A stretch of 38,940 bases of DNA from positions 1 to 38,940 of the forward strand of contig MU626438.1 of assembly GCA_025603075.1 (NCBI GenBank), given 5' to 3'. Positions within the stretch are counted from its first letter, which is position 1, and every line of letters starts with the position of its first letter. Of this stretch, positions 17,584 through 38,582 are shown in pieces. Below the pieces are notes generated by a model. It was not told the DNA's origin. It ran no database searches and saw nothing but the letters and a program-made list of their open reading frames with translations. The position numbers were made by a program, and so were the translations under genes. This DNA comes from Neoconidiobolus thromboides FSU 785 (lineage: Eukaryota > Fungi > Entomophthoromycota).

Positions 17584-19917
17584 TATTTTAAATAAATATA
17601 TTATATACAATCAGTAAAAAGTTTGTTTTTTTTAAGTTTATTATAATTAATTAGATCCACATAACTTATTTATATAGTTCAATTTTTGATACATTTTAGA
17701 ATAAATCCCTGTATATGCCCTATGATCATCTATCTAATTACATCTAACATCAGTGGGTATATTTTATAAAATTAGCTATAGACTTATGATATCATTGTAT
17801 CTAAATGAGGACTCTTTTGGTCAATTTTAGTTAAAGTCACCTGCTTAAATAAAGAAAAGCCTAAAAGTGACATCATCATAATTAAATAGGGTTGTTTATT
17901 AGAGTTTAACAAAATGATCAGGAGATATCATTATTAAAGAATAAATAAATTAATGAGAAGTTCTACTTCAAGCCAACCAATTGTTCCCGAGAAAATTACT
18001 TCAAAATGGGCTAATGAAAAAAATTAAAATAATTCAACATTTTAAACCAGGGTTTATATACACATGATAGGATATTAATAACGCTAATTATATATAACAA
18101 TTTTAATTATAATTTGTTTCCCTTTGTAGCAGGAAAATCAATCTTTTATTTGAATCTCACTATAAGCCTACTCAACAGGTGTACATTTTTAATGTATGAT
18201 GATCAACTTTTGGAGAAAAATCGGTTATTACATTTTACTTAGCCTCAGTTAAGTAATCAACCTTAATAGCTTTATTACTTTAGAATAATTAATTATTGAC
18301 ATGTCCAATAAAGTTTTATCTTGATAAATAATTCAATGACAATATCATAATAAAAAGGGTAACTTGGCATTATGTTATTATTTTTTCTATCTATATCAAA
18401 GGATATAAGAAGTGAACAACTTGAAGATGAAACTTCAAAAAGAAAGCAATAATATACCATTCTAATGAATCTCTTGATTGTATTATATTGAAAATTTATA
18501 TATTTGTTTTAAACGGATAGTCCGGCTTTAGATTATATACTTGTCTTTAAGGTTTAATCCCGAATTTGCTTTATTACTACATTATCTGTAATATGATAAA
18601 TAAGATTTGTTGATGTTATTCTATAAATTTTAATCATGGTCAATTCTATTAGCAAAACCATGACATCATTTTAATTTCGAGTATTATTTGACATAATTTT
18701 AATAAATAAAAATAGATAGAAATAAATATATAGCTATATTTCTAGAATTTTCTTTTAATCATCCAGCATAACATTATCATTTATCAAAATTTTGTATACT
18801 ATAATCATAAAGTGTTAAATTAAAATATCTAAAGTGCTATTCCAATTGAATGTTTAACTTTTGAAATATAATACAGATAGTTGAGACAAGCGCCTCTTAT
18901 TAATACAAAAACTATGGATGATAAATCCTTTTAGTATATTCTGATCAAAAAATCAAATAATATTTGTCAAAAGTTAGAAAGATTCTGATCAAAATAAAAA
19001 AGTATTCGTGAAAAAACAAAAATCAAATCTAGACAAAAAATAAGAATCATTCAAGTACTTTTATAAAAAGCGAAAAAAGTGAGCATTTAAATGACAGCTT
19101 TTATATTGATTTCTTTATATTTTAGTAAATGGCAAATCTGTTTTTTGATAAAAACATCAAGGAAAGATATGCTTATTATTTGCTTTACTAAATCCAATTA
19201 TTAGCTGACCCCGATTTTTTATTTATAAAATAACTATATATACTTTCAATAATAAGTAATGATGTCTAAATAAGCATTTTGAGAAATTAAAATTTTTAAT
19301 GTTTTTTTACATTATTTTAATAGTATGATATTAAACTTAGATTATACTATATCCTTTATAATTGGTATAATTTGAAGCATACCTTTCACATAAATATACA
19401 AGAAATGCAAAATCTTATTGCAAATAATATATGCCTCTATGCTAATAGAATAAAGAGATATCAAAAATTCAAACCAGCAACCAGAAGTTAAGAGTGTGGA
19501 GAAATCAGATAGTGACCAGTTTTTATAAAAACCAATGAATCACTTCGATATTCAAATGGTTTTTAGCTGGCATTTAATGGACTGCTTCGGTTGAAATAAT
19601 TTTATTATGATATTATATAAAAAATAGGCTTATAAAGTAATATGAGTTAATTTATTGTTATTAAAAATCCTTAAAGTATTTCAATAACAAATGTCTATTT
19701 ATAATATCAATAAATGTAAAAGATTCCATTACTATGAATAATGGCTAATTAGTAATGATTTTAAGTAAATGACCAATGAAATTTTACCGTTATTTAGCAC
19801 CATGATTTCATGACAAGAAAAATTAGGTTTGGAAGCATTTTTAATAGCGATTAAGGTAATATATCTTATAAATAACTTTTTATATTTAATAAATCAAAAT
19901 AAATAGAAAAAATTATA

Positions 19918-22900
19918 ATGATAAAGAAAAATGATATTGTTGTTTTGGAAATTTTGGCAATACAAGGGCGTAATTTACCTAACAAAGATTTTTTTAAAAA
20001 GCAAGATCCATTTCTAACCTTTCATATTGGTGAACAAGTACATCGTACCAAAGTTGATAAAAACGGTGGAACAAGACCAGAATGGAATAACAGGTTAAGA
20101 TTCGAGAGATTACGTGACCCTGTAGAAACTATAATGAAAATAAAATGTTTTGATGATGAATGGAAGAGGAAAGAGCAATTTATTGGTGAGTGTGCAGTTG
20201 ATTTAGGGCCTGTTTATAAAACAGGTGAATGCGATGGATGGTTTAAATTGTATGATCGAGGTAATCCAGCAGGTGAGGTTTATTTAGAACTAACCTTTTA
20301 TACCCAAAATGGTATCGCCAAAAAATATGCACAGGGAGTTGAAACATTAGCAATGGTACCTGAGGTTAAAACTTCACCGCCTAGCAAGCCTATTACTGGG
20401 CCTCAGCCAATAAACTCTCCAGGAAATACTGTTAAAGCAAATAATATAGATAGTTTGAATAATCAAAAAACAACACTTGATGATAAAAATCAAACTGAGG
20501 TAGTTGATTTAGAAAAAGTTCAACCAGTAAATGTCGTTCAAACACCCTCCAACATTCAGGATATGTCAACTCCAGATATCCCAAACGTTAATGCTATCAG
20601 TTCTGTCAAAGTTGATGAGACCCATAGCGGTCAAGAAGAAAAAATTGATAATGAAAAAAGTTCAAATTCAAAGCCAGAGGGTGTTGTTATTAACCAAAGT
20701 TCAACTGTCGAGGGTCTAACTCAGAGTTTGCAGAGTATAAACATTAATGATCAAGCAAGTTCACCAAATACTTCAGAGGATAGCAACCAACATCCTAATA
20801 AGATAGTTTCGGGGATAACTGGCAATATTGGAGAAATTGCAGCTCCTTTGAAAGCCAACGACTTTACCCCACCATCAGATAACACAGGAAGTATAAAAAA
20901 CGAATCTAAAAATCATCTTAATCCATCTCAGCCTTCAGAAGGTAATATGATAAATCAATATCATAATCAAGCAGTAGATCATCATCAACAAAAGCTAGAA
21001 GAAGCAAAACAAACCGATGTCCAGATAGTAAATGAGCCTTATATACCCGCACATATAAGTGCAAACGTAGCAGCTGGAATAGCAAATGCTGCAGCATCAA
21101 ATGCTCACTTTAACCAAAATGAAGTTACTACAACACCAAGTGATATACCACAATCTAGTTTCCAGGCACAATTGAAAGCACAACTTGAAGCAAGAAAAAA
21201 CAAACAAAATTTACAACATGTAACAAATCAAGATAATGTTTCAACACATCCACATTTAGTTGAGAATGAGGTACCATCTAACGATAGAATTAACTCATCT
21301 ATAAATAACACTGAGAATCAAATATCAAGTCCCCAAGTAAGTCAAATGTATCCTATAAACATCAGCCCAACTACTCAGGTGAATCATGTGACTCAAGCAC
21401 AAAATAACCCAATTTATAATCCACTTCAAATTCATCAAAATACACATGATATCCAGCTAAATAGCCAAAAAGTAAATCAAGAGCAATTCAGCCAAGATCA
21501 TCACGCTAAACTGATATCCAATAATGCTATAGTTGCTGAAACACATTCAATTACTAGTCAAGAACAAAACCCAGCCTTGAATGAAAATCATGCTCCTTCA
21601 ACTGTAACTAGCCCCCAGAACCAAGTATATCAAAATATAGTACCGGTGGGTCAACAAGTTCATACACAAAATACTGTTTATAATACAGATAATAGTACAT
21701 CAATAAACCAACCTTCTTCAAGTTCCCACCAAGCTCAAACTTCAGCTGAAAATATAGTCACCAATCAACTGCAGCCATCAATGGACCAACAAATCCAAGC
21801 TATCCCAGATAGCCTTGTTCAAAGCACTCATATATCTCAGACACCCTTAACTCATCCCATCAATCAAAATGTGACCAATAATCAAAGTTATCCAATTTTG
21901 TCGACAGCTAAGCCACAGCAACAGGCACATATCCAGGCCCACGTGGTGTCACAAACTCAGGATATAGTGACACAAGCTCAAAACGTAACCAGTAATCAAG
22001 GTCACTCAATTCTACCAACAGTTGAACCACACCAACAGATATATACTCAAGCCCATAATGTATCGCCACAAACACAAAATATAACTAGTAATCAAAGTCA
22101 ACCAATTTCATCGACAGCTGTATCACAGCAACAGGTGCATGTTCAAACTCATAATATACCACCACAGCCTCAAAGCAGCATATCTGGAAGCCAAAATTCA
22201 AGTTTATATCAAAACCAAGTCAATCAAAGCTCACCTCCTATTGACCATTATAGTCAACAAAATCAAGGGCAGGTACCTTATAAACCAGTTCAACACCAAA
22301 ACTCAATAAATAATAATGAATTGAACTATAACCAAAATACAAATATACCACATTCATTACAAATATCTACTAATACTACACAGGTGTATGCTAACAATAG
22401 TCAAAGCCAACCACATTTATCTTCTCATCCTACTACATCAGTTACCCAAGTTAATATCCATGGGCAAGCACAAACCGTATCCCAATTGAATCATAGTATA
22501 ACTGGAAAGCCCAATATGGATTCACCTATAGGCTCTCCTTATTATACGACCCCATATTATAATAGCAGCTCATATCAATCTCCTGTTTACAACAATAATG
22601 AGACATTGACAGGAGGAGGAGTATATAATACTGGACCAATCTATCCTCCAGCAATCAATTATACTGAAGTACAACAACAGCCCCTTGGTTTTGTATTCAA
22701 TCAAGTTTACCATCCACCTCCGGCAATGGCATATCCGCCTAACAAATATAGCACTAACAATACTTTTGCACCACAACCTCCAGTATCAGTAAGTAATTAT
22801 ATTCCTAATAGTAATACCAATACAAACAACTATACCCCTAATACCAATAGTTATAACAATTACAATCATAACAGCAATAGTTATAGTAGTAGTCATAGTC

Positions 22901-23265
22901 ATAATAATAATAGCTATAATAGTAATAGCTATAATAGTAATAGCTATAATAATAATTATAACAGTAATTATAATATCAGTACTAGCTCTATTGTACCACC
23001 CCCATTACCGAATAAACCATTAGACATGCCAAGTAATTATACATCGAATTTACCGCCACCTTTACCATCAAGGATACAAAGTCAGCCACCAATTCAACCT
23101 AATTTTGAAGGATTTTCATTTCCACAACCTAATGTACCAACAAATAGTAATAATACTTATCAACAACCAATTCCAGTAGTAAATAATAATAATTATAAAC
23201 CATTCCCTGCACCCGAAGAGAAAAAGAAAAAGAAAAAAAATCCGTTTAAATTCTTGGACTTTTAA
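19918..23265 (+). CDS. N-terminal C2-domain protein with long Q/N/S/P-rich tail and PxxP motifs (Inn1/Fic1-like architecture), 1115 aa
   Basis: GRNLPNKDFFKKQDPF..RTKVDKNGGTRPEWN..F..FDD..IG..GEVYLELTFY is a C2 domain of the Inn1/Fic1 type; PPPLPNKP and PPPLPSR occur near the C-terminus. Orthology is inferred from architecture only. Confidence 0.8.
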   Translation: MIKKNDIVVLEILAIQGRNLPNKDFFKKQDPFLTFHIGEQVHRTKVDKNGGTRPEWNNRLRFERLRDPVETIMKIKCFDDEWKRKEQFIGECAVDLGPVYKTGECDGWFKLYDRGNPAGEVYLELTFYTQNGIAKKYAQGVETLAMVPEVKTSPPSKPITGPQPINSPGNTVKANNIDSLNNQKTTLDDKNQTEVVDLEKVQPVNVVQTPSNIQDMSTPDIPNVNAISSVKVDETHSGQEEKIDNEKSSNSKPEGVVINQSSTVEGLTQSLQSININDQASSPNTSEDSNQHPNKIVSGITGNIGEIAAPLKANDFTPPSDNTGSIKNESKNHLNPSQPSEGNMINQYHNQAVDHHQQKLEEAKQTDVQIVNEPYIPAHISANVAAGIANAAASNAHFNQNEVTTTPSDIPQSSFQAQLKAQLEARKNKQNLQHVTNQDNVSTHPHLVENEVPSNDRINSSINNTENQISSPQVSQMYPINISPTTQVNHVTQAQNNPIYNPLQIHQNTHDIQLNSQKVNQEQFSQDHHAKLISNNAIVAETHSITSQEQNPALNENHAPSTVTSPQNQVYQNIVPVGQQVHTQNTVYNTDNSTSINQPSSSSHQAQTSAENIVTNQLQPSMDQQIQAIPDSLVQSTHISQTPLTHPINQNVTNNQSYPILSTAKPQQQAHIQAHVVSQTQDIVTQAQNVTSNQGHSILPTVEPHQQIYTQAHNVSPQTQNITSNQSQPISSTAVSQQQVHVQTHNIPPQPQSSISGSQNSSLYQNQVNQSSPPIDHYSQQNQGQVPYKPVQHQNSINNNELNYNQNTNIPHSLQISTNTTQVYANNSQSQPHLSSHPTTSVTQVNIHGQAQTVSQLNHSITGKPNMDSPIGSPYYTTPYYNSSSYQSPVYNNNETLTGGGVYNTGPIYPPAINYTEVQQQPLGFVFNQVYHPPPAMAYPPNKYSTNNTFAPQPPVSVSNYIPNSNTNTNNYTPNTNSYNNYNHNSNSYSSSHSHNNNSYNSNSYNSNSYNNNYNSNYNISTSSIVPPPLPNKPLDMPSNYTSNLPPPLPSRIQSQPPIQPNFEGFSFPQPNVPTNSNNTYQQPIPVVNNNNYKPFPAPEEKKKKKKNPFKFLDF
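21868..22173 (+). repeat. Three degenerate 32-38-aa tandem coding repeats (N[VI]T[NS]NQ...QQ..Q[AT]H...Q.Q)
   Basis: NVTNNQSYPILSTAKPQQQAHIQAHVVSQTQ.../NVTSNQGHSILPTVEPHQQIYTQAHNVSPQTQ/NITSNQSQPISSTAVSQQQVHVQTHNIPPQPQ in the translated ORF. Confidence 0.8.
22909..22950 (+). repeat. 15-bp coding tandem repeat (AATAGCTATAATAGT)x~2.8 encoding NSYNS
   Basis: Read directly; lies in the N/S/Y-rich segment. Confidence 0.85.
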
Positions 23266-23933
23266 AAAGAGATTTTGCTAACATTATTACAATATATTCC
23301 TTACGTTTTTGATATTTTTAATAAACTGTTATTTTAATAATATTGTATTTTTTATTATAACTATATATAAAAATACAAGAATCAGATTAAAGAGAAAGTA
23401 AATTCATTTTAAAAATAATTTGCATCTGATAATATAAAACTATAAATAGGTGTAACTAAAGGAAGTCAATGGAACAATGTTAATTCATATTTACAGTTTA
23501 CTTTGAAAACTTAATAGCAGTAAATATGTTTTTGTGATATGAAAATTATATTATTATTTTTGTTTAAACAGTTTATGAACTTATTATAATTATGAATTAT
23601 AGTATAATTGGTCATTCAAAGTACAAATTATTTTGGAACTAATCATTCAAAGAAATAACTTGTTTAAGTCTAGATTCAAAAATCAAATGATTAAATAAAG
23701 ACAATTAAAGTAAAAGTAAGTTAAAATAATGTTACAATGTGATTATGTAATTTATTTAAATATTATATTTATTTTATTTAAAACAATTGTACTTTATATA
23801 GTTATATTTAGAATCAGTTGATTTCTTTTAGAGAATATGGTTTTAGAAATAAAGTCATAATAAACCGATACATAAATCAAGTATAAAGTATATAAATAAA
23901 CCAAATATTAGAACACTTTTGTAAAACACAATA

Positions 23934-24992
23934 ATGAAGTATTTGCTATTAATCTCTATTTTATTAAATTTAGTATTGTCAAACAATAATTTAAGATTAA
24001 TTAAATTAAATGAAAAAGAGGATGGGAAATGGTTAAATGAAGCCCAAATATTTGATTTAATTAAAAATAACATTAATTTTTTTGATATTACTGAACATCC
24101 ACATCCCATTTTGTATACCCCAAACCAACGTAGTAGTAAATTTTATTTTCCAACTAAAACACAGCACAATGTATTGTTAAATAATACTTTTGGTCTAATT
24201 AATCAGCAATTTATGCAAACTTTCTTATCTAATTACTCTTCCTTTCATAATCGTTATTATAAATCAAACCATGGTTTAGATGCTTCAGTTTATTTAAAGC
24301 AGCATATTTCTTTACTACCAAATAATAATAACCTTGTTTTAAATCATTTCAATCACAGTTGGCTTCAACCAAGTGTTATTGCAAAGCTACCTGCAACAAA
24401 CAACGATGAAATCATTGTTATTGGTGCTCATTTAGATTCAATTAACTCAAATAATCCAAGCAACGGTAAAGCCCCTGGTGCTGATGACGATGGAAGTGGT
24501 GTAACTACATTATTAGAGACATTAAGACTTGTTTTAAAAAGTAATTTAAAATTTCAACGTAACATTGAATTCCAATTTTATTCTGCAGAAGAAGTTGGGT
24601 TATTAGGTAGTCAAGACATTGCACAGGATTATAGTAAAAACAACAAAAAAGTAATTGCCATGTTACAATTGGATATGACAGGTTATAATGAAAAGAATAA
24701 AGTTCGAGTTATTAATGATTACACAAATGTGGAATTAACTCAATATTTAAAACTGATTATTCAAAATTATTCTACTTACCCTTGGTTTGATGATAAATGT
24801 GGCTATGCTTGTAGTGATCATGCTTCTTTCAATCGCACTAATTACCCTTCTTGCCGTGCAGCTGAAGATGTAAAAAACTTTCGATTACATACTGAAAACG
24901 ATACTACTCAGTTTCTCAATTATAATCATATGGCAGAATTTGTTAAAATTTCTTTAGGATTTATATTCGAATTAGCTAATCCTATTTTATAA
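23934..24992 (+). CDS. Secreted M28 leucine aminopeptidase, paralog 2 (352 aa, intronless)
   Basis: Signal-peptide-like N-terminus; GAHLDS, GADDDGSG, SAEEVGL, QLDM and CGYACSDH. Confidence 0.93.
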   Translation: MKYLLLISILLNLVLSNNNLRLIKLNEKEDGKWLNEAQIFDLIKNNINFFDITEHPHPILYTPNQRSSKFYFPTKTQHNVLLNNTFGLINQQFMQTFLSNYSSFHNRYYKSNHGLDASVYLKQHISLLPNNNNLVLNHFNHSWLQPSVIAKLPATNNDEIIVIGAHLDSINSNNPSNGKAPGADDDGSGVTTLLETLRLVLKSNLKFQRNIEFQFYSAEEVGLLGSQDIAQDYSKNNKKVIAMLQLDMTGYNEKNKVRVINDYTNVELTQYLKLIIQNYSTYPWFDDKCGYACSDHASFNRTNYPSCRAAEDVKNFRLHTENDTTQFLNYNHMAEFVKISLGFIFELANPIL

Positions 24993-25266
24993 TTTTAATA
25001 AAAATTATATCAAATTTATTATTATGGTTCATTATTCTATAATTTTGATTAGATAATATTTTCATTATTTTAACTTCTTTTCTAAATAGAATTTGATATT
25101 TATTATTAAATAGTAGAATAATTAATTTTGTATTTTAAAACTTTAATATAGTATTACTGGATTATAACATTACAATAAATACAAATACTTTTTCTTTACA
25201 AAAGGGCTTATATATTCAACTTTAATAAACTAAACGATCAAACTAATTGAAGATAATATTAATAGA

Positions 25267-25371
25267 AAATGAAGATGTTTTTTAGTTTTATTACTTTTTC
25301 CATCTTTTAAGCGCTATTTGAGTGGAAAAATTGTTAGTAAAATTCTTAAATACAAAAATACATTCCCAAAT
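25267..25371 (-). mobile_element. MITE-like element
   Basis: Family core aagcgctatttgagtggaaaaattgttagtaaaattcttaaatacaaaaatacattcccaaat. Confidence 0.9.
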
Positions 25372-26214
25372 AATACTTGAATAATTCTAAATAAGGTAAA
25401 TTTTGAATTTATAACAATGGATCTTAGCGATAAAATAAATAGGTATTATTTTTATAATGCTTTGATATGCAACATTTTGTATATTATAAAGCAAATAATT
25501 ATTATTTAAATATAGTAATAAAATCATTTTAAGTTATATTTTAGCAAGTTGAGAATAAACAAACATGAATCATAATGATTATTTGTAATAAAACTATTAT
25601 GAGTAAATTTGAGCTCAAGGCTTAACTTTTTTCCAATTTAATATTTATTGCAAAAAAAGTAAATTAAGCACAAATACCAAGAAAGTGAAGGTGACTGACT
25701 CTTCTTTGTTGAATAAAGCAGGGTTTTTATTAATATTTTAAACTACTTTAAATATATATAAATTAATAAAAAAAAAGTATATTTTTTTTGATTTTTGACT
25801 TAGTCTTTGAAATTTCACGAGTCAAAACCTCAAATTTATAAAAAAATATTTCAGCTTTTAACTTGCCTTTAAACTCACCGATTTTATAAAAAATAAGCCA
25901 ATAATCTCAATAGCTTTATGTGTATGTAATATATTCTAGTTTAATCAAATAGATCACAAAAAAAGGGTCTAAATTATTTATTTACTAAAACCAAATTTAA
26001 TTAAAATAATACCTATTTAAAATCCCTATTATCATTACACTATGAAATCAATACCCGCTTAATATATCGTTTAAAGTTAATAGAAATGCGATGTTTTTAA
26101 AAAATAATAGATATGACCTAACTTCTTATCTTAAGAATAAATTATGAGTTACTAGTTACTAGTATTTAAACAAAGGTAATACTCATCTAATTTTATTTTT
26201 TAAACTTTTATAAA

Positions 26215-27527
26215 ATGGATAAAGATAAATTTGATATTGAAATACCAAACGTAGAAAGCAAAGAAAAGGGAAGCAGTTTTGGTGCCTATTTTAATATTGT
26301 GTGTGCTGTAGCTGGTACTGGTACTTTGGGTTTACCATATGCTATTAAAATTGGTGGTTGGTTAAGTATGCTAATTTTTTTACTGGTTGGGGTCCTTGCC
26401 ATTTACACCTCAAAATTATTAATTGAATGTCTTTATTATAAACCGTAAGTAATTCTATTTCAGTTTTTAGTGCTATACTAATTATACTTATTAGGGGGCA
26501 TAGGTTAGATCATTTCGCTGACATAGGAGAAGTATCTTTCGGAAAATTTGGCAAATACTTCATATTATTATTTAACTCTTTGATATTACTTTTATGCTCT
26601 TCCATCTATATTCTACTTACTGGTATTAATGTACGTACACTGGTTACACAATTTTACGGGGAGCAAGTTTTGTCTGACCAATTGTATATATTAATATGTG
26701 GAATAGGAATTATAATTCCCTGTATATTCTGCAAAACATTAAAAGAAGTCGCGCTATTAGCCTTATTTGGGACATTAGCAACTGTTGTCTTAGTTATTTG
26801 CGTAATTATTTTAGGTGGTATACAATATTCTCATCCTGATTTTACCCCATCTGAGCATACTTTATTTGATTTATCTGGGTTTCCAATAGCTTTAGTAACG
26901 ATTACTTTTTCATATGGTGGTAATGTTGTGTATCCACAAGTTGAGGCTACTATGCGCAATCCAAAAGCATGGAATAAAGTGATGGTCTTATCAGTATTAA
27001 CGATTACTTTGTTATACTCCCTTATTTCAGGTATAAGCTACTTTTATTACGGAAATTTGGTTACTTCCCCTATCTTGGACTCATTGCCTCCAGTAGCTGG
27101 TACTCAAGTATGTTATATAATGATAACTATACATGTCATATTAGCCACCCCAATCTACATGTGTACTTTTTGCTATGAACAAGAAATGGCATTAAAAATC
27201 GATACAAAGCATATGAGCAAAAAGAAGGAATTAGTTTATAGGACTATTTTACGTAGTTTTGTAGGAACTATACTGATCTTAATTGCTATGTATATACCCT
27301 TTTTTGAGGACCTCACTGCTTTAGTAGGCTCAATTACTGATTGTGTTATTATCTATCTTGTGCCTTTGGCATGCCACTATAAATTATTTGGCTGGCGCGG
27401 TAGAAAATGGTATGAATATATATTAAGTGTATTAACTGTAATAGTTGGTCTAACTGGGTTAATACTTGGTACTAAAGATGCTGTGTTAAATTTGATTGAT
27501 GATTTTCAAGGCATAAAAAATAAATAA
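26215..27527 (+). CDS. Aa_trans/AVT1-like amino acid transporter, paralog 2; exons 26215-26444 and 26495-27527
   Basis: SSFGAYFNIVCAVAGTGTLGLPYA; a 50-nt intron (GTAAGT..ACTAAT..TAG) gives YKP|GHRLDHFADIGEVSFG, in frame with the 26580 ORF. Confidence 0.92.
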
Positions 27528-27563
27528 AGATAAAGTTAACTACTGTTTATTATTAATTATTAT

Positions 27564-28898
27564 CTATTTGTTTCCTTGAAAAGCTTTTATAAGGTTCGAA
27601 ACCGCATCAATTGACCCTAATACTAACCCTAAAGCTCCTACAATAATACATAGTGGCGCCAGGATATAGTCATAGAATGGTCGTTTTTTAAACCCAAACA
27701 GTTTAAAATGACATATAACTGGAATTAAAAATATAATTAAGCAATTAGACACTGCACCAATTAAAGCCATGAGATCATTGAAATATGGGACATACATTGC
27801 TATAACTGTTAAGATAATACCAAAAAAGGAGCGCAAAAGGACACGATATACAAATTCTTTTTTAGGAGACATAAATTCAGTATCAATTTTTAGCCACCTT
27901 TCTTGCTCTAAGCAAAATGAACACAAATAAATAGGAGATGCTAAAATTACATGAATCGTAATAAGAATAGAAGCTACTAATGCACCAGGGCCTTTTTGTA
28001 AAGAATCGAGCACTGGAGACTTTACATTTTCACCATAAAAGACATATCCAGAAACAGCGACCACAATATACATACATGTTATTGATAAAATGGCCAATCC
28101 CATAACTTTATTCCATGCTTTTGGATTACGCATAGTAGCCTCTACATGGGGATATACAACATTACCGCCGTATGAAAAAGCAATAGTAGCAAGAGCGATT
28201 GGTAATCCTGACCAATTTACAACTTGTAAATCAGGTCTTACATAGTTTGGATCATAATACTGCATAGCGCCTAAAATAACTACACATAGTACCACTACTA
28301 ATGTTGCTACTGCACCGAATGCTGCTAATATCGCGATTTCCTTTAAAGTTTTTAAGCATGCGGTGGGGATAATAATGATAACTCCACTTATCAATATCCA
28401 TAATTTCAAAGAAATAAGCTCATCGCCATAGTAGTTTACCAAAAATGAATGTAAGTTTAAACCAGTAAGTAATATATAAATACAGGTACTTGATAATGAA
28501 ATTATGTAATGGAATATTTTAACGAAATATCTCCCGAATTTCCCAAAAGCAGCTTCACCAATATCTGGGTATTCTTCAAGCCTTATACCACTAATAAAAA
28601 TATTAGTAGACAGTTTCAAATGTTAAAATTTTACTCACGGTTTGCAGTATAGACATTCAATTAATAATTTTGAAGTATAAACAGCGAGACATGCAGCTAT
28701 TACAAATAAAACTAATGTAATGTGGCCACCTAACGACATAGCATATGGTAATCCTAAAGTACCAGTACCAGCGACAACACACACAATATTAAAATAGGCC
28801 CCATAGCTAGACCCGGTGCCTTTGCGAGGAACTTTGCTATCGTTATTATCGTGGGCATTTGAAAACTTTTCTACAAATTCATCGCCGCTTGCACCCAT
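27564..28898 (-). CDS. Aa_trans/AVT1-like amino acid transporter, paralog 3; exons 28898-28639 and 28590-27564
   Basis: SSYGAYFNIVCVVAGTGTLGLPYA; a 48-nt GTGAGT..TAG intron gives CKP|GIRLEEYPDIGEAAFG. Confidence 0.92.
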
Positions 28899-29694
28899 TT
28901 CCCTTTATTAAGTAATTAAATTTGTTGAAATATAAAATGTTTACTTAATCACTCAAGCTATTTATACTATTCTTATTTAATTATTTTCTAACCACTAATC
29001 TACTTTATTTCTAAAAAAATCTCGGTGTACTCTGAATTCAATCTAATCTATCAATTAACATTACATTTATAGTAATTATCTTATTTCTATAAAGAATATT
29101 CGTAATGCAGGCATAAAAAGATCCCAATTTTGAAGCTAAATAAGCCAATTAATCCACACTAGTATACCCTATAAGTTAATTTTATTGGAAAAATTGGAAT
29201 TATTCGAATGACAGGAATTTTAGCTATTTAAATAAGTCAAAACCACAATTCATTAAGATAAATATTAGTTTATTATAAAACATTAGTCACGTTTATAATA
29301 TTCTTTGGCTTAATATTTGAATACTATATTGGGCTTTATTATAGACTCCTGTAGTTTTTCAGATTAGAGAAAGATAGTCAGCTTACTCATTGTGATGGTT
29401 ACTTTTAATCAATCAGTTGTTATTTTCTTGTGATGCTTACATATTTTTAACCTTTCACGATTATAGAAAGAAAAAAATCTAAACAAAATATATAGGTAGG
29501 TAGTTTTATAGTGGAGTTCTTTATTTGTTACAATCGTATTCTTATTTGGCTTTAAGAATCGCATAACTTCAGTATAAAACTACTCATCTATATTAGATAT
29601 TTCTCCTGTTGCATTAAGGTACCTTTACCTTAAGTTTGTCCAAAATAAACTACAGAAACTTTTAAAAAAACCCCCACTATATTTGAATTAAAAT

Positions 29695-29799
29695 ATACAG
29701 GGATGTATTTTTGTATTTAAAAGTTTTATCAATAATTTTTCTACTCAAATAGCGCTTAAAAAATGGAAAAAGTATGAAACCAAAAAAACATCACCATGT
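29695..29799 (+). mobile_element. MITE-like element
   Basis: cagggatgtatttttgtatttaa...agcgcttaaaaaatggaaaaag...catcaccatgt. Confidence 0.88.
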
Positions 29800-30081
29800 G
29801 TATTTCAAAGCTTTAAGCTAATTAAATCGCAAATGTTTTAAATTTATAAATGGTTTATTTAACTTTTATAAATGATGTCATAATAAAAATTTAAAAAACA
29901 AATTAAAAAACTTAAATTAAAAAATAAGACTTTTATTTTTAATAAAAAAACTCTTTCATATATAAGATATAAACTTTAAATTTTTAAATTTATGTTTTAA
30001 AATAATAATAAAAATTGGTTTTTAAAAATTTATAAAAATTTAATGAAATAAGCGTATAATTTAATTTAGATATAATAATAA

Positions 30082-30186
30082 ATATGGGGATTTTTTTTTG
30101 ATTCATTACTTTTTCTATCTTTTAAACGCTATTTAAGTGGGAAGATTATTAGTAAAATTGTTAAATGAAAAAATACATCCCTATAT
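30082..30186 (-). mobile_element. MITE-like element
   Basis: atatggggattttt...family core...aatacatccctatat. Confidence 0.88.
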
Positions 30187-30384
30187 ATCTATTATAGTAA
30201 TACAATCCAAATTTGTTATAAATATAAAAGCTATCGTTTTTAAAATCATTATATTTTAATTAAAAACACTGAAATAATATTACTTATACAACTTAATTTA
30301 AATAAAAAAGTTTTAGAATTAACTCGAACTTTCAATAGTTCTAAATAATTTAACAAAGCAATACAAACTACAAAAGCTAACTTT

Positions 30385-30491
30385 GTATGGGGATGTACTT
30401 TTGTATTTGAGAATTTTACTAATAACTTTTCCACTTAAATAGCGCTTAAAAAATGGAAAAAATAATGAAACTAATAAAAACATCACCATAT
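30385..30491 (+). mobile_element. MITE-like element, left arm of a head-to-head pair
   Basis: tatggggatgtacttttg...catcaccatat; shares ATAT 30488-30491 with the next copy. Confidence 0.92.
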
Positions 30492-30592
30492 GGGAAGTTT
30501 TTTTGACTTCACTATTTTTTCCATTTTTTAAGCGCTATTTAAGTGGAAAAGTTATTAGTAAAATTCTCAAATACAAAAGTACATCCCCATAT
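30488..30592 (-). mobile_element. MITE-like element, right arm of a head-to-head pair
   Basis: atatgggaag...caaaagtacatccccatat; 30513-30591 is the exact reverse complement of 30386-30464. Confidence 0.92.
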
Positions 30593-30607
30593 AAATATTT
30601 GTATAAT

Positions 30608-30713
30608 ATATGAGGATGTTTTTTTGGCTTCATTGCCTTTTCTATCTTTTAAGCATTATTCGAGTGGAAAAATTGTTAATAAAATTCTTAAATACAAAAA
30701 TGCATACCCATAT
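30608..30713 (-). mobile_element. MITE-like element
   Basis: atatgaggatgttttt...family core...tgcatacccatat. Confidence 0.88.
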
Positions 30714-31172
30714 ACCAGATTTATAAGCGCTTTCATATGTATTTATTTGAAGAGAAAATAGTTAAACAAGCTTAAATAAAAAGTAAAAATTAAAATTTTT
30801 CACTATGACTTAAGTTAATTCGCAGCTTTATTGAAGCTACTACTGGATGTATTGTTTGGCACGGCTATTATTTAAATATTTAGAATGTGATGTAAAAGGA
30901 GATTTTAGTGTAAATTTAACATCAAATAACTTTTAATACTTCTGAAATATGTCTAATGATCAGTATTTATTTATGTGGGGCTTTTTTTGAAGCTAAAAAA
31001 TCCTTTTATCATCATCCTGCTGTTTTTTAAAATTGCTTTATTTTTTGCGTTTTTGTTGTTCAATCTATTAATCTTGAAAAAACATAAATTCGGCGAAAAA
31101 TTAAAATAGAAAATGACAATGTAAATATATAAAATAAGTCTATAGATAATATTTATTATAAGTGATAAGAGA

Positions 31173-32297
31173 CTACATTAATTTTTTGATAGAAGCGGCA
31201 ATATCACCGAAATTATCTTTGATAAATCCTTTCGCAAGGTCACGACTTTCCTTTAAAACTTGTTTACGGACACCACTAAGGATAACTAATTTTTCATCAT
31301 ATTTAGCACCTTTGTATTCATTTAAGATCGCTTCATCTGCAGTAGGACCTAAAATAGCATTAGTAGTAGCAGCCAAAACTAAGCCTGCATATGGAATGGC
31401 ACTAATTCCAGAAGTTACGGCTGTTCTCATATATTTTAAAGCTTTGTTACTATAAGCCATTTTAGACGCATTAATCAAAGGTAAATTTTCAAGACATGAG
31501 GCTAAAGTAGCTGCTTCATTTGACCATTTACTTGATCCACAAAAATAACCACGATCTTTTTCATAACTCGTACCCCAATAACCACAAGAAGATTTAGTTT
31601 CCGAATTTGGTATTAATCTGAAACAATTGCTAAAATCGTGTGGCATGGCAGCAGTTTGCAGTACGTCATTAGCCAATAGGCAAATCTTATCAATACCTAA
31701 TGCATGGTCATCAGATTGAATTGTTTGTGCGTCTTTATTATATAACTTAGTATTGTTTAAGATTTTAGTGACTATACTTTCAGTCATCTTAATTTGAAAT
31801 ACTTGACGATAGTTACGATCATCTGGATGTAGATTATCCATTGGTACAATAATGGATCTTAAGCCTTGTCTTAAATCCACAGACACATAGTTTAAATTAC
31901 CAATATTAGGTGCTACATATAAGTAATCTCTGGCTTTTTCAGTAGACGAAATTTCCATAGTTTCTAAATTATTCATATCTGCAATGGAATCAGTAGTCTT
32001 GACTCGAAAATTATCAGTACAATATTGACGACAGGTTAAACAACAGGATTCAGTATCACGAAGACAAGTTTTTCCTTGATACCAGCTTCTTGATTCATCA
32101 AAAGTATCTTTTCCTGCTATTGGTACCCAATGGTGTAGCGGTTGACAGTTACGTTGATATTTTGGTGATATATCAACTTCAAACCATACCATACCATTCT
32201 TAAGCTTATAGCATTTCTTATCCAAATAAGCAAGCCCAAGCGGGTTTTGACATAAAGTTGAAACAATAAAAAAGAAGAGAGGTAAAGCTAAAAGCAT
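31173..32297 (-). CDS. Unrecognised secreted Cys-rich protein, paralog A (374 aa, intronless)
   Basis: Long ORF in AT-rich DNA; hydrophobic N-terminal signal-like segment; 12 Cys after the leader; ~80% identical by manual count to 35242-36360. Confidence 0.9.
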   Translation of the reverse strand: MLLALPLFFFIVSTLCQNPLGLAYLDKKCYKLKNGMVWFEVDISPKYQRNCQPLHHWVPIAGKDTFDESRSWYQGKTCLRDTESCCLTCRQYCTDNFRVKTTDSIADMNNLETMEISSTEKARDYLYVAPNIGNLNYVSVDLRQGLRSIIVPMDNLHPDDRNYRQVFQIKMTESIVTKILNNTKLYNKDAQTIQSDDHALGIDKICLLANDVLQTAAMPHDFSNCFRLIPNSETKSSCGYWGTSYEKDRGYFCGSSKWSNEAATLASCLENLPLINASKMAYSNKALKYMRTAVTSGISAIPYAGLVLAATTNAILGPTADEAILNEYKGAKYDEKLVILSGVRKQVLKESRDLAKGFIKDNFGDIAASIKKLM

Positions 32298-32335
32298 TTG
32301 ATTGTTTTGTATATTTTTGAGTCATTTGGATTCCA

Positions 32336-32344
32336 TTATATATA
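32336..32344 (-). promoter_or_regulatory. TATA box (TATATATAA) ~40 nt upstream of paralog A
   Basis: Same sequence, flank (AAAAAAACTATATATAA) and spacing are conserved upstream of paralog B (36401-36409). Confidence 0.6.
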
Positions 32345-33920
32345 GTTTTTTTAGTATTTCGGATACTGAATACAAAATGAATATTATTTATAAAGCAGTG
32401 TTTGATATCTAATAATTTAACAACAAACATGAACTAATAAAGAACAAATAAGTGTAACGATTTCAGAATAAATACTGATATGGTTTAGTTTTTGAAATAT
32501 CAAAATAGTGCAACTAATTATATTCTTTAAATCATTACATAATTTATAAACCACTCGTTATTTAATCTTTATTTTATTTTCCTGGTCTTAAAAATGCTTA
32601 ATTACTTATTCTGTCCTTTAGCAGTTATATGTTAAATCAATGAATTCTCTGATATCACTCTAACTTATCCATGGCAGTTTAGGATACTATAATTACCCAG
32701 CTCTTTGATACTCGATCATATTTGTAGTAATTTGATTATTGTATCGAGCTAATATTATTTAACACATTTTCATTGAGGTTTGTTATTAAAATAGCATATT
32801 TTATATTTATATTATACTGGTTAATGATACAAAGCCCATATTTTTACGATGAATATACATTAACATAGAAATTTTTCTATCAAAGGTGTAGTCAACATGA
32901 AGTGTTTTTTTAAATTATGCACTAAATAAAGGCCATTCATTCATTTGCGGTTTATCTAAAATTAATAAATTACGTTAACTTGAAAGTATGTAAAAAAGCC
33001 ATTTTTGTACTTGAGAAGAAATACAAATTTAAAGTGTATTAATTATACTTCCGTCTAAAACCGATTAAATGTTTGGATTTTTTTATCGTTCAACCAATAT
33101 TAATTGAAATGATTTTTATAATGTAAAAAATTTAAAATTTAAATTACAGTTAATTCAAGTTAATCTCAGTCAAAATTTAATTTCTTCCAATTAACAGAAT
33201 CTTTTTCATGAGTTTCGTTTTCTAACTTTACAGTGCTTATTTATCTCAAAAATTGAGGGGCTAAACTTAAATACCCACATTTCTTAATAACTAACAATTA
33301 GATTTTTTTTTTCGATTATATTTAAAATTTATCTTTTTTTTATGCTGATGTTACTTTCACTACTCTTGTATTTAATTATAAGGGGATTTATAAAGTGATC
33401 TGGTCTTTTTTCCTGATCCAAACCGCAAGAGTAATTAACTGCAACTATAAAACTAATTTTAAAATTCAGCCTAAAAATCCAAAAAACATTATTGATATGT
33501 TAAAACAGCTAAATAGCGCTCTCCATTATAGTGTTAGTTTTCATTTTCTAAACAGACATTTTAAATCAATTTGAAGTGATCAATGTTTTGTTATTGCTGA
33601 TTGTAAAATAGTATCAGCTACTTTATTTATAATGGAAGTAGAATTCAAAGAGTTCAAAAAGTAAAGCTTTTATAGTAGTCTATGGCCTATTTTCACACAA
33701 ATCAAATAGGCTAGATTATTTTACAAATTACTTTGTATTAAATATATTTAAAAAAATAGGTATTTTTGGTTGTTAAAAATATTTTTTAAAACTATTTATC
33801 CAAGCGACCGTATCATATTGATGAACTTGCCAATTTTTGTTTATATTATATTAATTAAAAATGTCGGATTAACTTTTGAACATTTTTAAAATTTTCAGAT
33901 ATAAGACTGTTAAATCCAAC

Positions 33921-34027
33921 ATACGAGGATATATTTCTGTGTTTAAGAATTTTACTAACAATTTTTCCGCTTAAATAGTGCTTAAAAATGGAAAAAATAA
34001 TGAAGTCAAAAAAAGCACTTTCCATAT
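33921..34027 (+). mobile_element. MITE-like element, degenerate termini
   Basis: Family core tttaagaattttactaacaatttttccgcttaaatagtgcttaaaaatggaaaaaataatgaagtcaaaaaaa. Confidence 0.87.
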
Positions 34028-34147
34028 TATAGAGTAATTTTTTTAGTGATTTTTTAAATTATACAAAAATCGATTTATTTGGTGTTAAAATCTAAAGTTT
34101 AAATAAAAAAAGTTTTTCGTATTAATTTCAGTTATAATATCTGAAGT

Positions 34148-34246
34148 TGTGAAACTGGTACTCAGCGGTTGGAATCAAAAGGTTTTGGTTTACGTAGCTA
34201 GGATAAACTTGAATTATCAAGAATAGTACGTAATAAATAGGCTATG
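34148..34246 (+). repeat. Dispersed repeat family 2, copy 2 (homologous to 1-144, opposite strand)
   Basis: Manual alignment to the reverse complement of 1-144; mostly transition differences plus a ~37-nt deletion. Confidence 0.75.
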
Positions 34247-34896
34247 GACTATGTAAGACAAATAGAATAGACAATACTAATGTAAATCTACGTAAAATAC
34301 TACTAAGAAAACTTAGTGGCTTTACTAAATGTTCGAGATATCAGAGGATAATTCAGTTAAAAAGCCTCGAGTTACTATGTTTTAGGATCTTTTTTATACT
34401 CCGGCAAGTATGGATATCAAAACGAGAGGATGATATTCTTTGAGGCAAAGATAGAAATTTTCACAGCAAATCAAACCAAGAACGTGGGATTGATTGTCTC
34501 TAAACTCAAGAACACGACAGCTTAGGCGATTATTATGCTATAATCAACCATGGGGCTGACAAAGCGATATTTCACATTATAAAAAATTAAAAACTGATTT
34601 TAATATTCCTGCTTAAAATAACTTAAAATTAAATAATATATTAAAAAGGCTATATTATTTATATAATAAAAGAGTAAAAAGATTAAATATTGAAAGCTTT
34701 TTTCAAAAACAATTTTATCAGTAGTATTTAATGATGTAAGTAATTGGATAATTCAAGGCTTAAAATCAGGTACATGAGATTTTTATATGATAATAGTAAG
34801 CTTTGCTTTGCTAAAATAACTAAAAAATTAAATGATTTTAGATAAAAGCTTTTATCCATTTATTTCATTTTCTAGGTTTAACTTTTTCATGTTAGT

Positions 34897-34933
34897 ATTT
34901 AGGGATGATTCCTTTGGCTTCATTACTTTTTAC
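34897..34933 (-). mobile_element. Truncated MITE-like fragment (one end only)
   Basis: tttagggatgattcctttggcttcattacttttt resembles atatggggatgtttttttggcttcattactttttc. Confidence 0.55.
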
Positions 34934-35241
34934 TAAATATATAATAAAAAGTCATAGACTTAAAAAGTGTAATTTTTTATTACACAACCTAACAGTTTTG
35001 ACTTTGGGGTGTTTTCTAGTAAACTCTATTTCTTTTTCTGCCTTTATTTGGCCTTTTTACAAATAGCTATAAAGATGTCTTTATATTATATAGCATTTTC
35101 ATTGCTTGATTAGGCCATTATGATTATATGTATATTTTATAAAAATAACATTTATAATTATATTATTTAAACCAAGGATTGAAAAAACATCATGAAACAA
35201 AATAAATTTAAAGCCAAGCGTTTATTAAAAACAATATACGA

Positions 35242-36360
35242 TTATAACACTTTCTTAATGGATTTGATAATGTCACCAAAATGTTCCTTAAAATATCCTT
35301 TTGCAAGGTTACTACTTTCCTTTAAAACTTGTTTACGAACTCCACTAAGGATAACTAATTTTTCATCATATTCAGCCCCTTTATATTCACTAAGAATTAA
35401 TTCATCAGCAGTTGGGCCTAAAATAGCATTAGTGGTAGCAGCTAAAACTAAACCAGCATATGGGATAGCTGAAATACCAGCAACAACAGCAGTTCTCATA
35501 TATTCTAAAGCTTTGGTATTATAAGCCATTTTAGATGCATTGATTAATGGTAGGTTTTGAAGACATGAAGCCAAAGTGGCTGCTTCATTTGACCATTTAC
35601 TTGATCCACAAAAATAACCACGATCTTTATCATAACCCGTACCCCAATAACCACAAGAACCTCGGACTTCTTTATTTGGAATTAATTTAAAGCAGTTACT
35701 AAACTCATATGGCATAGCAGCGGTCCTCAACATATCATTAGCTAATAAGCAAATCTTATCAATACCTAATACATGGTCATTGGATTGAATTGTTTGTGCA
35801 TCTTTATTATATAAATTAGTATTATTCAAAATCTTAGTAACAATACTTTCAGTCATTTTAATTTGAAATACTTGACGATAGTTATGATCATCCGGATGTA
35901 GATTATTCATTGGTACAATAATGGATCTTAAGCCTTGTCTCAAATCAACCGAAAGATAATTTAAGCTCCCAATGCTAGGAGCTAAATACAAATAATCCCT
36001 GCTTTTATGAGTCGATGTAATCTCCATGACATCTAAATCCTTCATATCAGCAATGGAATCAGTAGTACCAACGCGAAAATTATCAGTACAATATTGACGA
36101 CAAGTTAAGCAACAAGACTTTGAATTACGAAGACAACTCTTTCCTTCATACCATTCCTTTGATTGTTTATCCTTTCCTAATATAAGCACCCAATGGTGTA
36201 ACGGTTGGCAATTACGTTGATATTTTGGTGATATATCAATTTCAAACCATACAATATCATAATCGAGCTTATAGCATTTCTTATCAAGGTAAGTTAAGCC
36301 AAGAGGATTTTGACATAGAATCGAAGCGATAAAGAAGAAGAGAGATAGAGCTAGAAACAT
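35242..36360 (-). CDS. Unrecognised secreted Cys-rich protein, paralog B (372 aa, intronless)
   Basis: Same leader and all 12 mature-region Cys as paralog A; intact ORF. Confidence 0.9.
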   Translation of the reverse strand: MFLALSLFFFIASILCQNPLGLTYLDKKCYKLDYDIVWFEIDISPKYQRNCQPLHHWVLILGKDKQSKEWYEGKSCLRNSKSCCLTCRQYCTDNFRVGTTDSIADMKDLDVMEITSTHKSRDYLYLAPSIGSLNYLSVDLRQGLRSIIVPMNNLHPDDHNYRQVFQIKMTESIVTKILNNTNLYNKDAQTIQSNDHVLGIDKICLLANDMLRTAAMPYEFSNCFKLIPNKEVRGSCGYWGTGYDKDRGYFCGSSKWSNEAATLASCLQNLPLINASKMAYNTKALEYMRTAVVAGISAIPYAGLVLAATTNAILGPTADELILSEYKGAEYDEKLVILSGVRKQVLKESSNLAKGYFKEHFGDIIKSIKKVL

Positions 36361-36400: not shown

Positions 36401-36409
36401 TTATATATA
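36401..36409 (-). promoter_or_regulatory. TATA box (TATATATAA) ~40 nt upstream of paralog B
   Basis: Position and flanks conserved with 32336-32344. Confidence 0.6.
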
Positions 36410-37279
36410 GTTTTTTTAATATTTCCAATACTAAATATATACTGAATATTAAGTATAGTGTAGAATTTTTATATTTAATGATTCGAGTTACTAGTGAATA
36501 TGAACTAATAGGGAATAAATTAATACAAAATTTTGAAGTGATTATATTATAGTTTACTTACCAAGCTATTAAACTAATATAACTAATCGTATTCTTTAAA
36601 ATTTCTACATATAATCTGCGACACACCCGTCATTAATATTTTTATTTGATTTTCTTGGCTTATCAAAATGATTATTTATTCTATTCTTTAATAACTATAT
36701 ATTGAACACATTAGTTTTTTGAGATCATATTAGCTTGCACACAGTGCTTTTAATTTCTATAATTACTTAATTGTTAAAATTTTGTTAATATTTGAAATGT
36801 TCTGTTTGTTATATTAAGTTAATATTACTTTTCAGAGTTTCACCTGATATTTATTATTAATATAATCTATTTATATAATAACATATTGATACAATACAGC
36901 TACTACTTACATTTAAATAGTTGATAAAGTAAAATTAATTAATAACATAAGCATAAACAACGCTATACAATGCTTTACTAAAGCTATAGTTTACATAAAA
37001 AGTATTTTTTAGTTACGTGTTAGACCAAAAGCTAGATATGATATAGTTAAAAATTTTATTAAAGTTCGTTGATTTAGTAGATTTAAAAACGCCATTTTTA
37101 CACTCAAGAAGAAATCCAGACCTAATTTGATTTACACTCCCATGTAAAATTGACCAAGTGTTTTGGTTTTTTATCATTGGAATAGTATTATAATCAATTA
37201 CAAAAAAAATTAAATTTTCATTTATTAAATTATACAATGCTAGAAGATTTGTTTTAAAAAGTGAGGTACTAAAAACTTT

Positions 37280-37373: not shown

Positions 37374-37447
37374 TTTATCAAATATTTAAAAAATAGCTAA
37401 AAATTTGTTTTTCAAATACTTTTATTTCGTAATTTAAGTATATGAGG

Positions 37448-37552
37448 ATATGGGGATGTTTTTTTCGATTTCATTACTTTTCCATTTTTTAAGCACTATT
37501 GAGTGGAAAGATTGTTAGTAAAATTCTTAAACACAAAAATACATCCCCAAAT
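37448..37552 (-). mobile_element. MITE-like element with both 8-bp TIRs perfect
   Basis: ATAT GGGGATGT...ACATCCCC AAAT. Confidence 0.92.
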
Positions 37553-38191
37553 GCTAATATATTTACTAAATTTATCATTTTATAAATTAAATATTTTAAT
37601 AAGAGTAAAAAAATAAAAATTGTATTTTAAATAGTAGTTACTATCTGTGACGTTTTTTAAAATTTTAAAAAAAGCTACAAAAATTTATAACAAACCTTAT
37701 AAATAAAAAAACTTCAATATAATAAAATATAAATTATTTAGTATTAATTCTTATTACCTTTGTATTATATTTAATTTTTTTTATAAGATTATAGTAATTT
37801 GAATATCTCTATATCAAATCTAAGTTTTCTAAAAAGTATAAAAGCCAGCTAAATGTTGTTATAGTATATATTATATGTTTTTAATTTATTTTTAGACTTA
37901 ATATAGGCTTGTACTACTTTTTATAATAAATGTAATAACTTCAGAATTTTAATTATTTTAAATTTAAGACTATCATAAAGCTAACTCAGACTATTTCAAG
38001 CTCCTGTACTAAATTACTATTTTATGTTTTATAGTGTTTTTTAAATAGTTACAAAGCTTGTATTCACCCTATATAGTTCTTTTATTACTTTCGGGCTTAT
38101 ATAATCAATTATGTCTCTTGTAGAGTAAAGCTTATAATTATAATATTCAAGTTTATAAAAAACCCAAATGAAATTTATTATAACTTTAAAC

Positions 38192-38205: not shown

Positions 38206-38362
38206 TAATTGGTTTCAGAATCTATTTAGAAATTAATCCAAATTTTAAATTTCAAGTTTGTGTCCAATATAACGGTTAAATCTAAAAAGCCTAAAATTAA
38301 ATGTCTCTATTTAAAACTTATTTTAATTGTTTCCTTTTCTTAAATAGCTAATTTTCCTAACT

Positions 38363-38469
38363 ATATGGGAGTGTTTTTTTTGACTTCATTATTTCTTCCA
38401 TTTTTTAAGCGCTATTTAAGCGGAAAATTTATTAGTAAAATTCTTAAACACAAAAATACATCCCCATAT
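38363..38469 (-). mobile_element. MITE-like element
   Basis: atatgggagtgtttt...aagcgctatttaagcggaaaa...aatacatccccatat. Confidence 0.9.
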
Positions 38470-38582
38470 ATTTTATGTTAGTTCTGTTAGATATTTAACA
38501 GATATATAATATATAACTATATGATTATACAATTATATAAATACAGTTATTTGACTTTATTTTTTGTTGAAATAAAAATAAA

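Follow-up and report, generated by a model that had tools for sequence, protein, structure and literature searches.

An orphan family of putative secretory-pathway glycoproteins in the fungus Neoconidiobolus thromboides

Are two neighbouring genes that encode unrecognised, cysteine-rich proteins with signal-like leaders the source of freely secreted effectors, or do they encode proteins of another kind? The question is raised by a stretch of DNA of 38,940 nucleotides (the window, here taken at its whole length) from contig MU626438.1 of assembly GCA_025603075.1, which the database naming of the assembly's proteins assigns to Neoconidiobolus thromboides FSU 785. A preliminary description, based only on the letters of the DNA, had presented the two genes, called A and B in this study, as a tandem pair from a candidate novel family of secreted effectors or toxins. 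Our analysis indicates that A and B belong to an orphan family of putative secretory-pathway glycoproteins that is real and under selection, and this statement is much better supported than any specific mechanism. As to the mechanism, we tentatively read A and B as functional members of an orphan multigene family whose product would be a type I glycoprotein held in a membrane, which may cycle through the early secretory pathway or be retained there. A type I membrane glycoprotein is weakly favoured over a free effector.

Genes A and B and their family

The two genes had been described as intact open reading frames (ORFs) of 374 and 372 amino acids with about 80% identity, and this description holds: the coordinates agree with those of the ORF list (Table 1), and BLASTP aligns the two proteins from end to end with 304 identities in 374 positions (81%) and a single gap of two residues. 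In a word-index search the protein of gene A retrieved the window's own database protein, also of 374 amino acids, with 100% identity over the full length. The Nei-Gojobori method gave a dN of 0.112 and a dS of 0.78 for the pair, that is, a dN/dS of 0.14. The similarity of A and B is not due to chance; the duplication is old, and purifying selection has been kept on both copies.

Each of the two proteins contains 13 cysteines. Cys16 is the last residue (position -1) before the point where the signal peptide is predicted to be cleaved, directly ahead of the mature start QNPLG, so that 12 cysteines would remain in a mature protein of 356-358 residues (about 358 in A). All 12 align between A and B, and the N-terminal cluster shows the spacing that had been read before (C78-x6-C85C86-x2-C89-x3-C93). 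The two N-glycosylation sequons, NNT at residue 181 and NAS at residue 276, are present in both proteins, and the two long blocks quoted as invariant were found again in both when the BLASTP alignment was examined. The signal-like leaders were likewise recovered by rule-of-thumb reading: residues 1-16 of the nine intact copies discussed below reach a 12-residue Kyte-Doolittle mean of 2.4-3.2 (2.87 in A), with small residues at positions -3 and -1 in 9/9 copies (Thr and Cys, respectively, in A).

To count the copies, the genome assembly, which comprises 24.6 Mb in 799 contigs (named here by the letter C and a number, the window being contig C181), was searched in six frames with protein A and with a family profile. 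At least nine intact, full-length copies were detected: A and B on C181, one copy each on C3, C122, C139, C112 and C75, and two on C29. At least five further loci (C275, two on C349, C77 and C81) are decayed, with stops or frameshifts in them, and other copies are cut where their contigs end (on C346 at both ends, C237, C532, C637, C773, C161 and the start of C122). This supplies the paralog count proposed in the preliminary description, and its "tandem pair" stands only in part: A and B do adjoin each other, but they are members of a dispersed family and not a stand-alone duplication. Tandem or near-tandem copies also occur on C122, C29 and C349. A profile search of the same genome for distant paralogs, or for other bearers of the C-terminal module, returned family copies only. 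The family evolves by birth and death.

Two observations on the damaged copies concern the assembly itself. The decayed copies C349:2408-3453 and C422:4897-5942 contain several stops each and have identical match scores, and the C422 match may represent a second assembly of one of the C349 loci. Contig C346 (14.6 kb) has inverted family copies at its two ends, 2-619 on the plus strand and 13970-14587 on the minus strand, each cut at residue 168, which points to an inverted duplication left unresolved or to a collapse of the assembly at family members.

The maximum-likelihood tree of the family separates two well-supported clades of six and three copies. The closest paralog of gene B is the C3 copy (dS 0.205, 93.4% nucleotide identity) and not its neighbour A. 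Comparison of the nine intact paralogs also narrows the claim that all mature cysteines are conserved, which is correct between A and B, since family-wide only 10 cysteines are invariant, together with the NNT sequon. The other two, Cys86 and Cys89, form a CxxC pair and were lost together in the three-member clade; this joint loss suggests that they are disulfide-bonded to each other.

The purifying selection proposed for the pair was found in the family as a whole. Pairwise dN/dS lies between 0.09 and 0.37 for all intact pairs, and pooled pN/pS in 30-codon windows runs from 0.10 to 0.46, with no window above 0.46 and none near 1. The diversifying selection that is typical of arms-race effectors was thus detected in no region of the alignment.

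The searches for relatives corroborate the view that the family is unrecognised and restricted to one lineage. With all nine members, Pfam at E<=10 gave a best E of 0.099, in a single member and at 12.8 bits where the cut-off is 26; two or more members had no family in common, and neither CFEM nor another cysteine-rich domain was found. A scan of NCBIfam returned nothing, PHROGs gave single-member matches only (E of 0.02 or worse), and the nine-member profile had 0 matches at E<=10 among 177,635 PDB sequences. The word-index protein search retrieved only proteins of this genome. A HMMER profile search of 1.84 billion cluster representatives, which stand for about 15 billion public proteins, gave two matches, both from this genome; one of them, P0008, is the C-terminal half of the broken C275 copy. 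No relative was found in IMG/VR or in metagenome contigs of JGI with full-length and C-terminal profiles, exact-protein look-ups in public assemblies gave nothing, and in the literature we found no paper that names the locus tags or describes the family. As far as public data go, the family thus appears to be an orphan found only in N. thromboides; this restriction may in part be a sampling effect, given the few annotated close relatives.

A confident match to a known enzyme or structural family, which would have spoken against novelty, was not obtained either: the sequence searches were empty, and AlphaFold2 and Foldseek gave nothing usable, the fold part of this result being the weak one. 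AlphaFold2 reached a mean predicted confidence (pLDDT) of 33 for the whole protein with the nine-sequence alignment, and of 52 for residues 262-374 with a 13-sequence C-terminal alignment, the latter as an all-helical model of low confidence with which the best Foldseek match in PDB had a not meaningful E of 0.56; the Lys/Glu-rich tail came out helical in both models, at low confidence. In ESM Atlas, queried by features and by structure with the whole protein and with residues 270-374, only generic helical matches were found (scores <=0.83), and the Atlas's own model has a pLDDT of 0.29. Three specific identities were considered and rejected: a phospholipase A2, as the CC-x2-C block has no His-Asp dyad; glycosylphosphatidylinositol (GPI) anchoring, as the C-terminus is not hydrophobic; and a Kex2-processed polyprotein, as there are no conserved KR or RR sites.

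The family members also share their regulatory surroundings. A TATA-box block lies about 40-55 nt upstream of the ATG, with a core common to 9/9 intact paralogs, and an upstream element of about 29 nt, some 125-150 nt ahead of the ATG, aligns in 9/9 paralogs, even at dS >1, between clades whose synonymous sites are saturated. When the genome was searched with the 29-nt consensus, allowing <=3 mismatches, eight occurrences were obtained, 8/8 of them upstream of family copies, compared with 0 for the reversed control; the element is kept even at the decayed C349 and C422 copies. Shortly 3' of the stop, AATAAA occurs at an aligned position in 8/9 paralogs, C139 being the one that has none. From these alignments, each family gene looks like a transcription unit complete in itself, without introns and with a promoter element that is specific to the family and common to its members.

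Evidence of transcription comes from one public run (X1), presumed to be RNA, whose contigs were aligned to a 5.8-kb stretch with A and B. They cover only the miniature inverted-repeat transposable elements (MITEs) around the genes, the greater part of gene B and a short portion of gene A; none falls on the unique intergenic DNA. The 1038-nt contig aligned to gene B (depth 68) differs from it at 42 sites and has the letter of the C3 paralog at 37/37 listed differences, and X1 thus behaves like RNA of the same strain. A 152-nt contig (depth 3.5) matches gene A with 1 mismatch. These data suggest that the C3 paralog is transcribed, and hence that the family is expressed, and they are no proof for A or B themselves. 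Overall, the family is probably transcribed.

The C-terminal module and the membrane question

The strongest constraint in the family lies on the C-terminal module, not on the cysteine-rich domain. The lowest pN/pS, 0.10, was found at columns 301-330, where the hydrophobic segment passes into the tail, and most alignment columns of the hydrophobic segment are invariant. The most variable parts are two loops at columns 46-90 and 226-270 (pN/pS 0.31-0.46), and the central block at columns 121-225, which has no cysteine until Cys206, shows values of 0.12-0.16. Variable outer loops combined with a most-conserved anchor and tail are the pattern of type I surface families, for example the Giardia VSPs.

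The hydrophobic segment reaches a 19-residue Kyte-Doolittle maximum of 1.41-1.85 across the family, and 5/9 copies are at or above 1.6, the mean usually taken as the transmembrane threshold. The tail that follows ends in KKXX in 6/9 intact copies, A and B included, and in several fragments. The dilysine KKXX is the classical COPI retrieval signal, and it works only on a cytosolic tail. Taken together, the KKXX ends and the hydrophobic segment make membrane retention fit at least as well as free secretion.

On this basis the following sequence of events can be proposed for the type I membrane glycoprotein. The product would enter the secretory pathway by means of a signal peptide that is presumably cleaved. 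A domain of about 275 residues would then fold, N-glycosylated and braced by disulfides, with five conserved pairs and the optional CxxC pair as the likely arrangement. The C-terminal module of about 85 residues, predicted to consist of a borderline-hydrophobic Ala/Gly/Thr helix and then a Lys/Glu-rich helix, would hold the protein on the membrane in a putative type I orientation, with the cysteine-rich domain towards the lumen or the outside and the tail in the cytosol, where the KKXX of most copies might act as a COPI retrieval or trafficking signal. The proteins would accordingly be displayed on membranes or held in the secretory pathway rather than diffuse freely as effectors. In favour of this reading, the most constrained window of all (pN/pS 0.10) is the one with the hydrophobic segment.

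Several findings weigh against it. In the segment Ala, Gly and Thr abound, Leu, Ile and Phe are scarce, and there is an internal Pro and Asn; in the intact C112 copy the segment even contains Glu and Asp (Kyte-Doolittle mean 1.41). The segment is preceded by 2-3 Lys/Arg, the net charge on that side being 0 to +3 (+2 or +3 in 7/9 copies), and is followed by a net charge of -2, which is contrary to the positive-inside rule and opposes a type I anchor. Simple anchors are rarely so invariant, and the near-invariance of the segment suggests sequence-specific packing rather than mere anchoring. The KKXX is missing in the C3 and C139 copies, both of which end in KNVL, and in C112, which has a shorter end, and it could be a by-product of the Lys-rich helix. 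Moreover, AlphaFold2 gave no usable fold for the whole protein or for the C-terminus (pLDDT 33 and 52), and X1, the run whose nature as RNA is itself presumed, holds nothing specific to gene B.

Some of these findings would be expected of the main alternative, a soluble effector or toxin that is released, in which a cysteine-rich targeting or binding domain would carry a latent membrane-inserting C-terminal module (a shielded hydrophobic helix of colicin or Bcl-2 type) acting on the membranes of a host or competitor. A signal peptide with no more than a borderline-hydrophobic segment after it, flanking charges that speak against co-translational type I anchoring, the acidic residues within the segment of one intact copy, and a module as invariant as that of a sequence-specific machine rather than a plain anchor are all in line with it. 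The tail has amphipathic stretches at residues 339-360 and 355-372, with 18-residue local hydrophobic moments of 1.5-1.9; the amphipathic moment of the whole 44-residue tail, however, is no higher than that of shuffled sequence (z 0.9-1.4). The genes also lie in MITE-rich regions prone to assembly breaks and show birth-and-death turnover, as in many effector families, and N. thromboides has been described as an insect pathogen (PMC9391592). Nevertheless, no alignment window has a dN/dS near or above 1, the protein is larger than usual small secreted effectors, and KKXX would have no role in a released protein. In addition, no likeness to any pore former was found in sequence (Pfam, PDB and the 1.84 billion representatives) or in predicted fold (Foldseek on the low-confidence model). 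We consider a released effector possible, although somewhat doubtful.

A bolder form of the same idea would make the family an unprecedented kind of fungal membrane-active protein, in which a disulfide-locked, glycosylated targeting domain delivers an invariant helical module that inserts or assembles in target membranes after secretion and is used against insect or microbial cells. We regard this as decidedly unlikely. A prediction of self-association for two copies of the C-terminal module gave a score of 0.00 against a mark of 0.32, a result that counts neither for nor against binding.

The pattern of constraint also bears on a third explanation, that of a glycoprotein with a structural or adhesive role outside the cell, in the wall, on the conidial surface or in the matrix, whose C-terminal helices would be a soluble domain for oligomerisation or core packing. 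The strong and uniform purifying selection on the central block is what such a protein might show, its disulfide scaffold and glycosylation sites are conserved, and the small residues that recur every 3-4 positions in the hydrophobic segment, as read from the alignment, are compatible with tight helix-helix packing. A GPI signal, a Ser/Thr-rich stalk and the repeat architecture of wall proteins are all lacking from the family, on the other hand, and a 19-residue Kyte-Doolittle mean above 1.6 is, as a rule of thumb, uncommon in soluble proteins. A structural role is therefore unlikely in our estimate.

Genomic setting and features of the window

The positions of the parts of genes A and B and of their flanking elements are given in Table 1.

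Table 1. Features of genes A and B in the window
Feature	Position	Strand	Remarks
Gene A coding sequence	31173..32297	minus	Intronless, 374 aa + stop; ORF list
Gene A signal-peptide-like leader	32250..32297	minus	Residues 1-16; rule-of-thumb reading
Gene A cysteine-rich domain	31422..32249	minus	Residues 17-292; 12 Cys, sequons N181 and N276
Gene A Ala/Gly/Thr-rich hydrophobic segment	31344..31421	minus	Residues 293-318; Kyte-Doolittle 19-residue maximum 1.53
Gene A Lys/Glu-rich tail, predicted helical	31176..31343	minus	Residues 319-374; ends in KKLM
Gene A TATA-box block	32336..32352	minus	Core kept in nine paralogs
Gene A family-specific upstream element (~29 nt)	32421..32449	minus	125-150 nt upstream of ATG
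Gene A AATAAA signal	31149..31162	minus	Aligned in 8/9 paralogs
Gene B coding sequence	35242..36360	minus	Intronless, 372 aa + stop; ORF list
Gene B signal-peptide-like leader	36313..36360	minus	Residues 1-16; rule-of-thumb reading as in A
Gene B cysteine-rich domain	35491..36312	minus	Residues 17-290
Gene B hydrophobic segment	35413..35490	minus	Residues 291-316; Kyte-Doolittle 19-residue maximum 1.83
Gene B tail, predicted helical	35245..35412	minus	Residues 317-372; ends in KKVL
Gene B TATA-box block	36401..36417	minus	Core kept in nine paralogs
Gene B family-specific upstream element	36491..36520	minus	Aligns with the nine-paralog block
Gene B AATAAA signal	35218..35231	minus	Aligned in 8/9 paralogs

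Opposite the conserved 3' end of gene B lies a plus-strand ORF of 110 amino acids (35192-35524). As no counterpart of at least 100 amino acids was found opposite gene A, this antisense ORF is probably due to chance.

Between loci of the family, similarity does not reach beyond the ORF by more than about 100-700 bp, and the loci have no neighbouring gene in common. The duplication unit was thus the gene itself and not a larger mobile element carrying it, a possibility that these short shared flanks rule out. The same observation bears on a further origin that can be imagined for the family, namely an envelope-like glycoprotein captured from a virus or mobile element, domesticated and then amplified. 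The layout of the protein (signal peptide, cysteine-rich glycosylated domain, Ala/Gly-rich hydrophobic segment preceded by an invariant Arg, KKXX tail) is reminiscent of certain viral glycoproteins and might by this analogy point to such a source, and the copies are dispersed among MITEs. However, the duplicated unit has no viral or transposon neighbour in common, no match was found in IMG/VR, PHROGs or the 1.84 billion proteins, the composition of the family is that of the host genome, and the heptad-repeat regions and second anchor of class I fusion proteins are missing. A captured glycoprotein is in our opinion very improbable.

The seven loci with intact copies are nearer to contig ends than would be expected if they were placed uniformly (Fisher combined p = 0.0009). 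A telomeric position was considered for the family and rejected, as no telomere-type repeats were present at the contig ends examined; repeat-rich surroundings and unresolved near-identical copies are the likely cause of the bias.

The preliminary description had placed the genes in a MITE-rich compartment beside secreted peptidases, and this agrees with what we found. The window is AT-rich (20-37% G+C), and MITE-like elements of 100-120 nt lie around both A and B. At least eight copies of about this length, in both orientations, are located within 29689-30729, 33911-34017, 37440-37568 and 38355-38485, including a head-to-head pair at 30382-30595 that is 94% complementary, and the same element is also found a short way 3' of the C3 and C112 paralogs. 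In X1 the element is very abundant: summed over the contigs, the depth on the copy at 33.8-34.0 kb is about 13,500. The peptidases are of the M28 family and are encoded at 14699-15802 and 23934-24992, 6-16 kb from A and B.

Three Aa_trans amino-acid transporter genes (16185-17321, 26580-27527 and 27564-28619) are interleaved with the M28 genes over 14699-28619, and a C2-domain protein of 1115 amino acids is encoded at 19918-23265. Farther off, the minus-strand ORFs at 4662-5498, with an RNA ligase domain, and at 2807-4339, with kinase and cyclic phosphodiesterase domains, together contain the domains of a fungal tRNA ligase; 2807-5498 has the appearance of a single Trl1-type gene that is interrupted by an intron or a frameshift.

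Comparison with known systems

Molecular knowledge of the interaction between entomophthoralean fungi and insects is almost non-existent. A family that is selected, probably transcribed and present in at least nine members, with no relative among the public proteins searched and no predictable fold, gives concrete access to lineage-specific biology. What sets it apart is the invariant C-terminal module, hydrophobic and amphipathic, whose small size would permit direct tests of localisation, topology and membrane activity. If the membrane-active reading were true, this would be a previously unseen kind of fungal protein.

Among known systems, CFEM and the fungal eight-cysteine domains are fungal and, as is predicted for the present proteins, secreted, with a disulfide-rich N-terminal cluster. 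They differ in the spacing of their cysteines, and the Pfam search at E<=10 gave no CFEM in the nine members, which also have no GPI signal. The pore-forming domain of colicins and peptides of the candidalysin type combine, as the present proteins are predicted to do, a helix of moderate hydrophobicity that is rich in Ala and Gly with amphipathic, Lys-rich helices, placed C-terminally in a secreted protein. Neither matches in sequence or, with a low-confidence model, in fold; the module of about 85 residues is shorter than the colicin domain, and the conserved dibasic processing sites of candidalysin are absent.

The Giardia VSPs are likewise multicopy, with their outer loops most variable and their C-terminal segment and tail most conserved. 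Unlike them, the present family has only about nine intact copies, 3.4% cysteine, no CXXC arrays, a strongly conserved ectodomain core and a long tail, and there is no evidence in it of switching or of mutually exclusive expression.

Lineage-specific families of secreted cysteine-rich effectors resemble the family in more respects, since these have a signal peptide, as is predicted here, and likewise an even number of conserved cysteines, no Pfam domain and a restriction to one lineage, together with a transposon-rich location, tandem duplication and pseudogenisation. The small secreted proteins among them differ in size, the mature protein of about 358 residues exceeding the limit of 300 amino acids that has been used for this class (PMC9391592). 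They also differ in that purifying selection acts here over the full length, and in the conserved hydrophobic and amphipathic C-terminal module with KKXX, which is normally absent in such families.

Type I proteins with KKXX ends, such as yeast Wbp1 and Emp47 and the adenovirus E3-19K, are the last group to be compared. The family has no sequence relationship to them, its segment is borderline with inverted flanking charges, and KKXX is not universal in it. The likeness is one of sequence features, with a predicted topology on our side, and it covers the predicted sequence of elements: a signal peptide, a lumenal glycosylated domain, one hydrophobic segment and a tail of 56 amino acids, of a size fit for the cytosol, with Lys at -4 and -3 in 6/9 intact copies.

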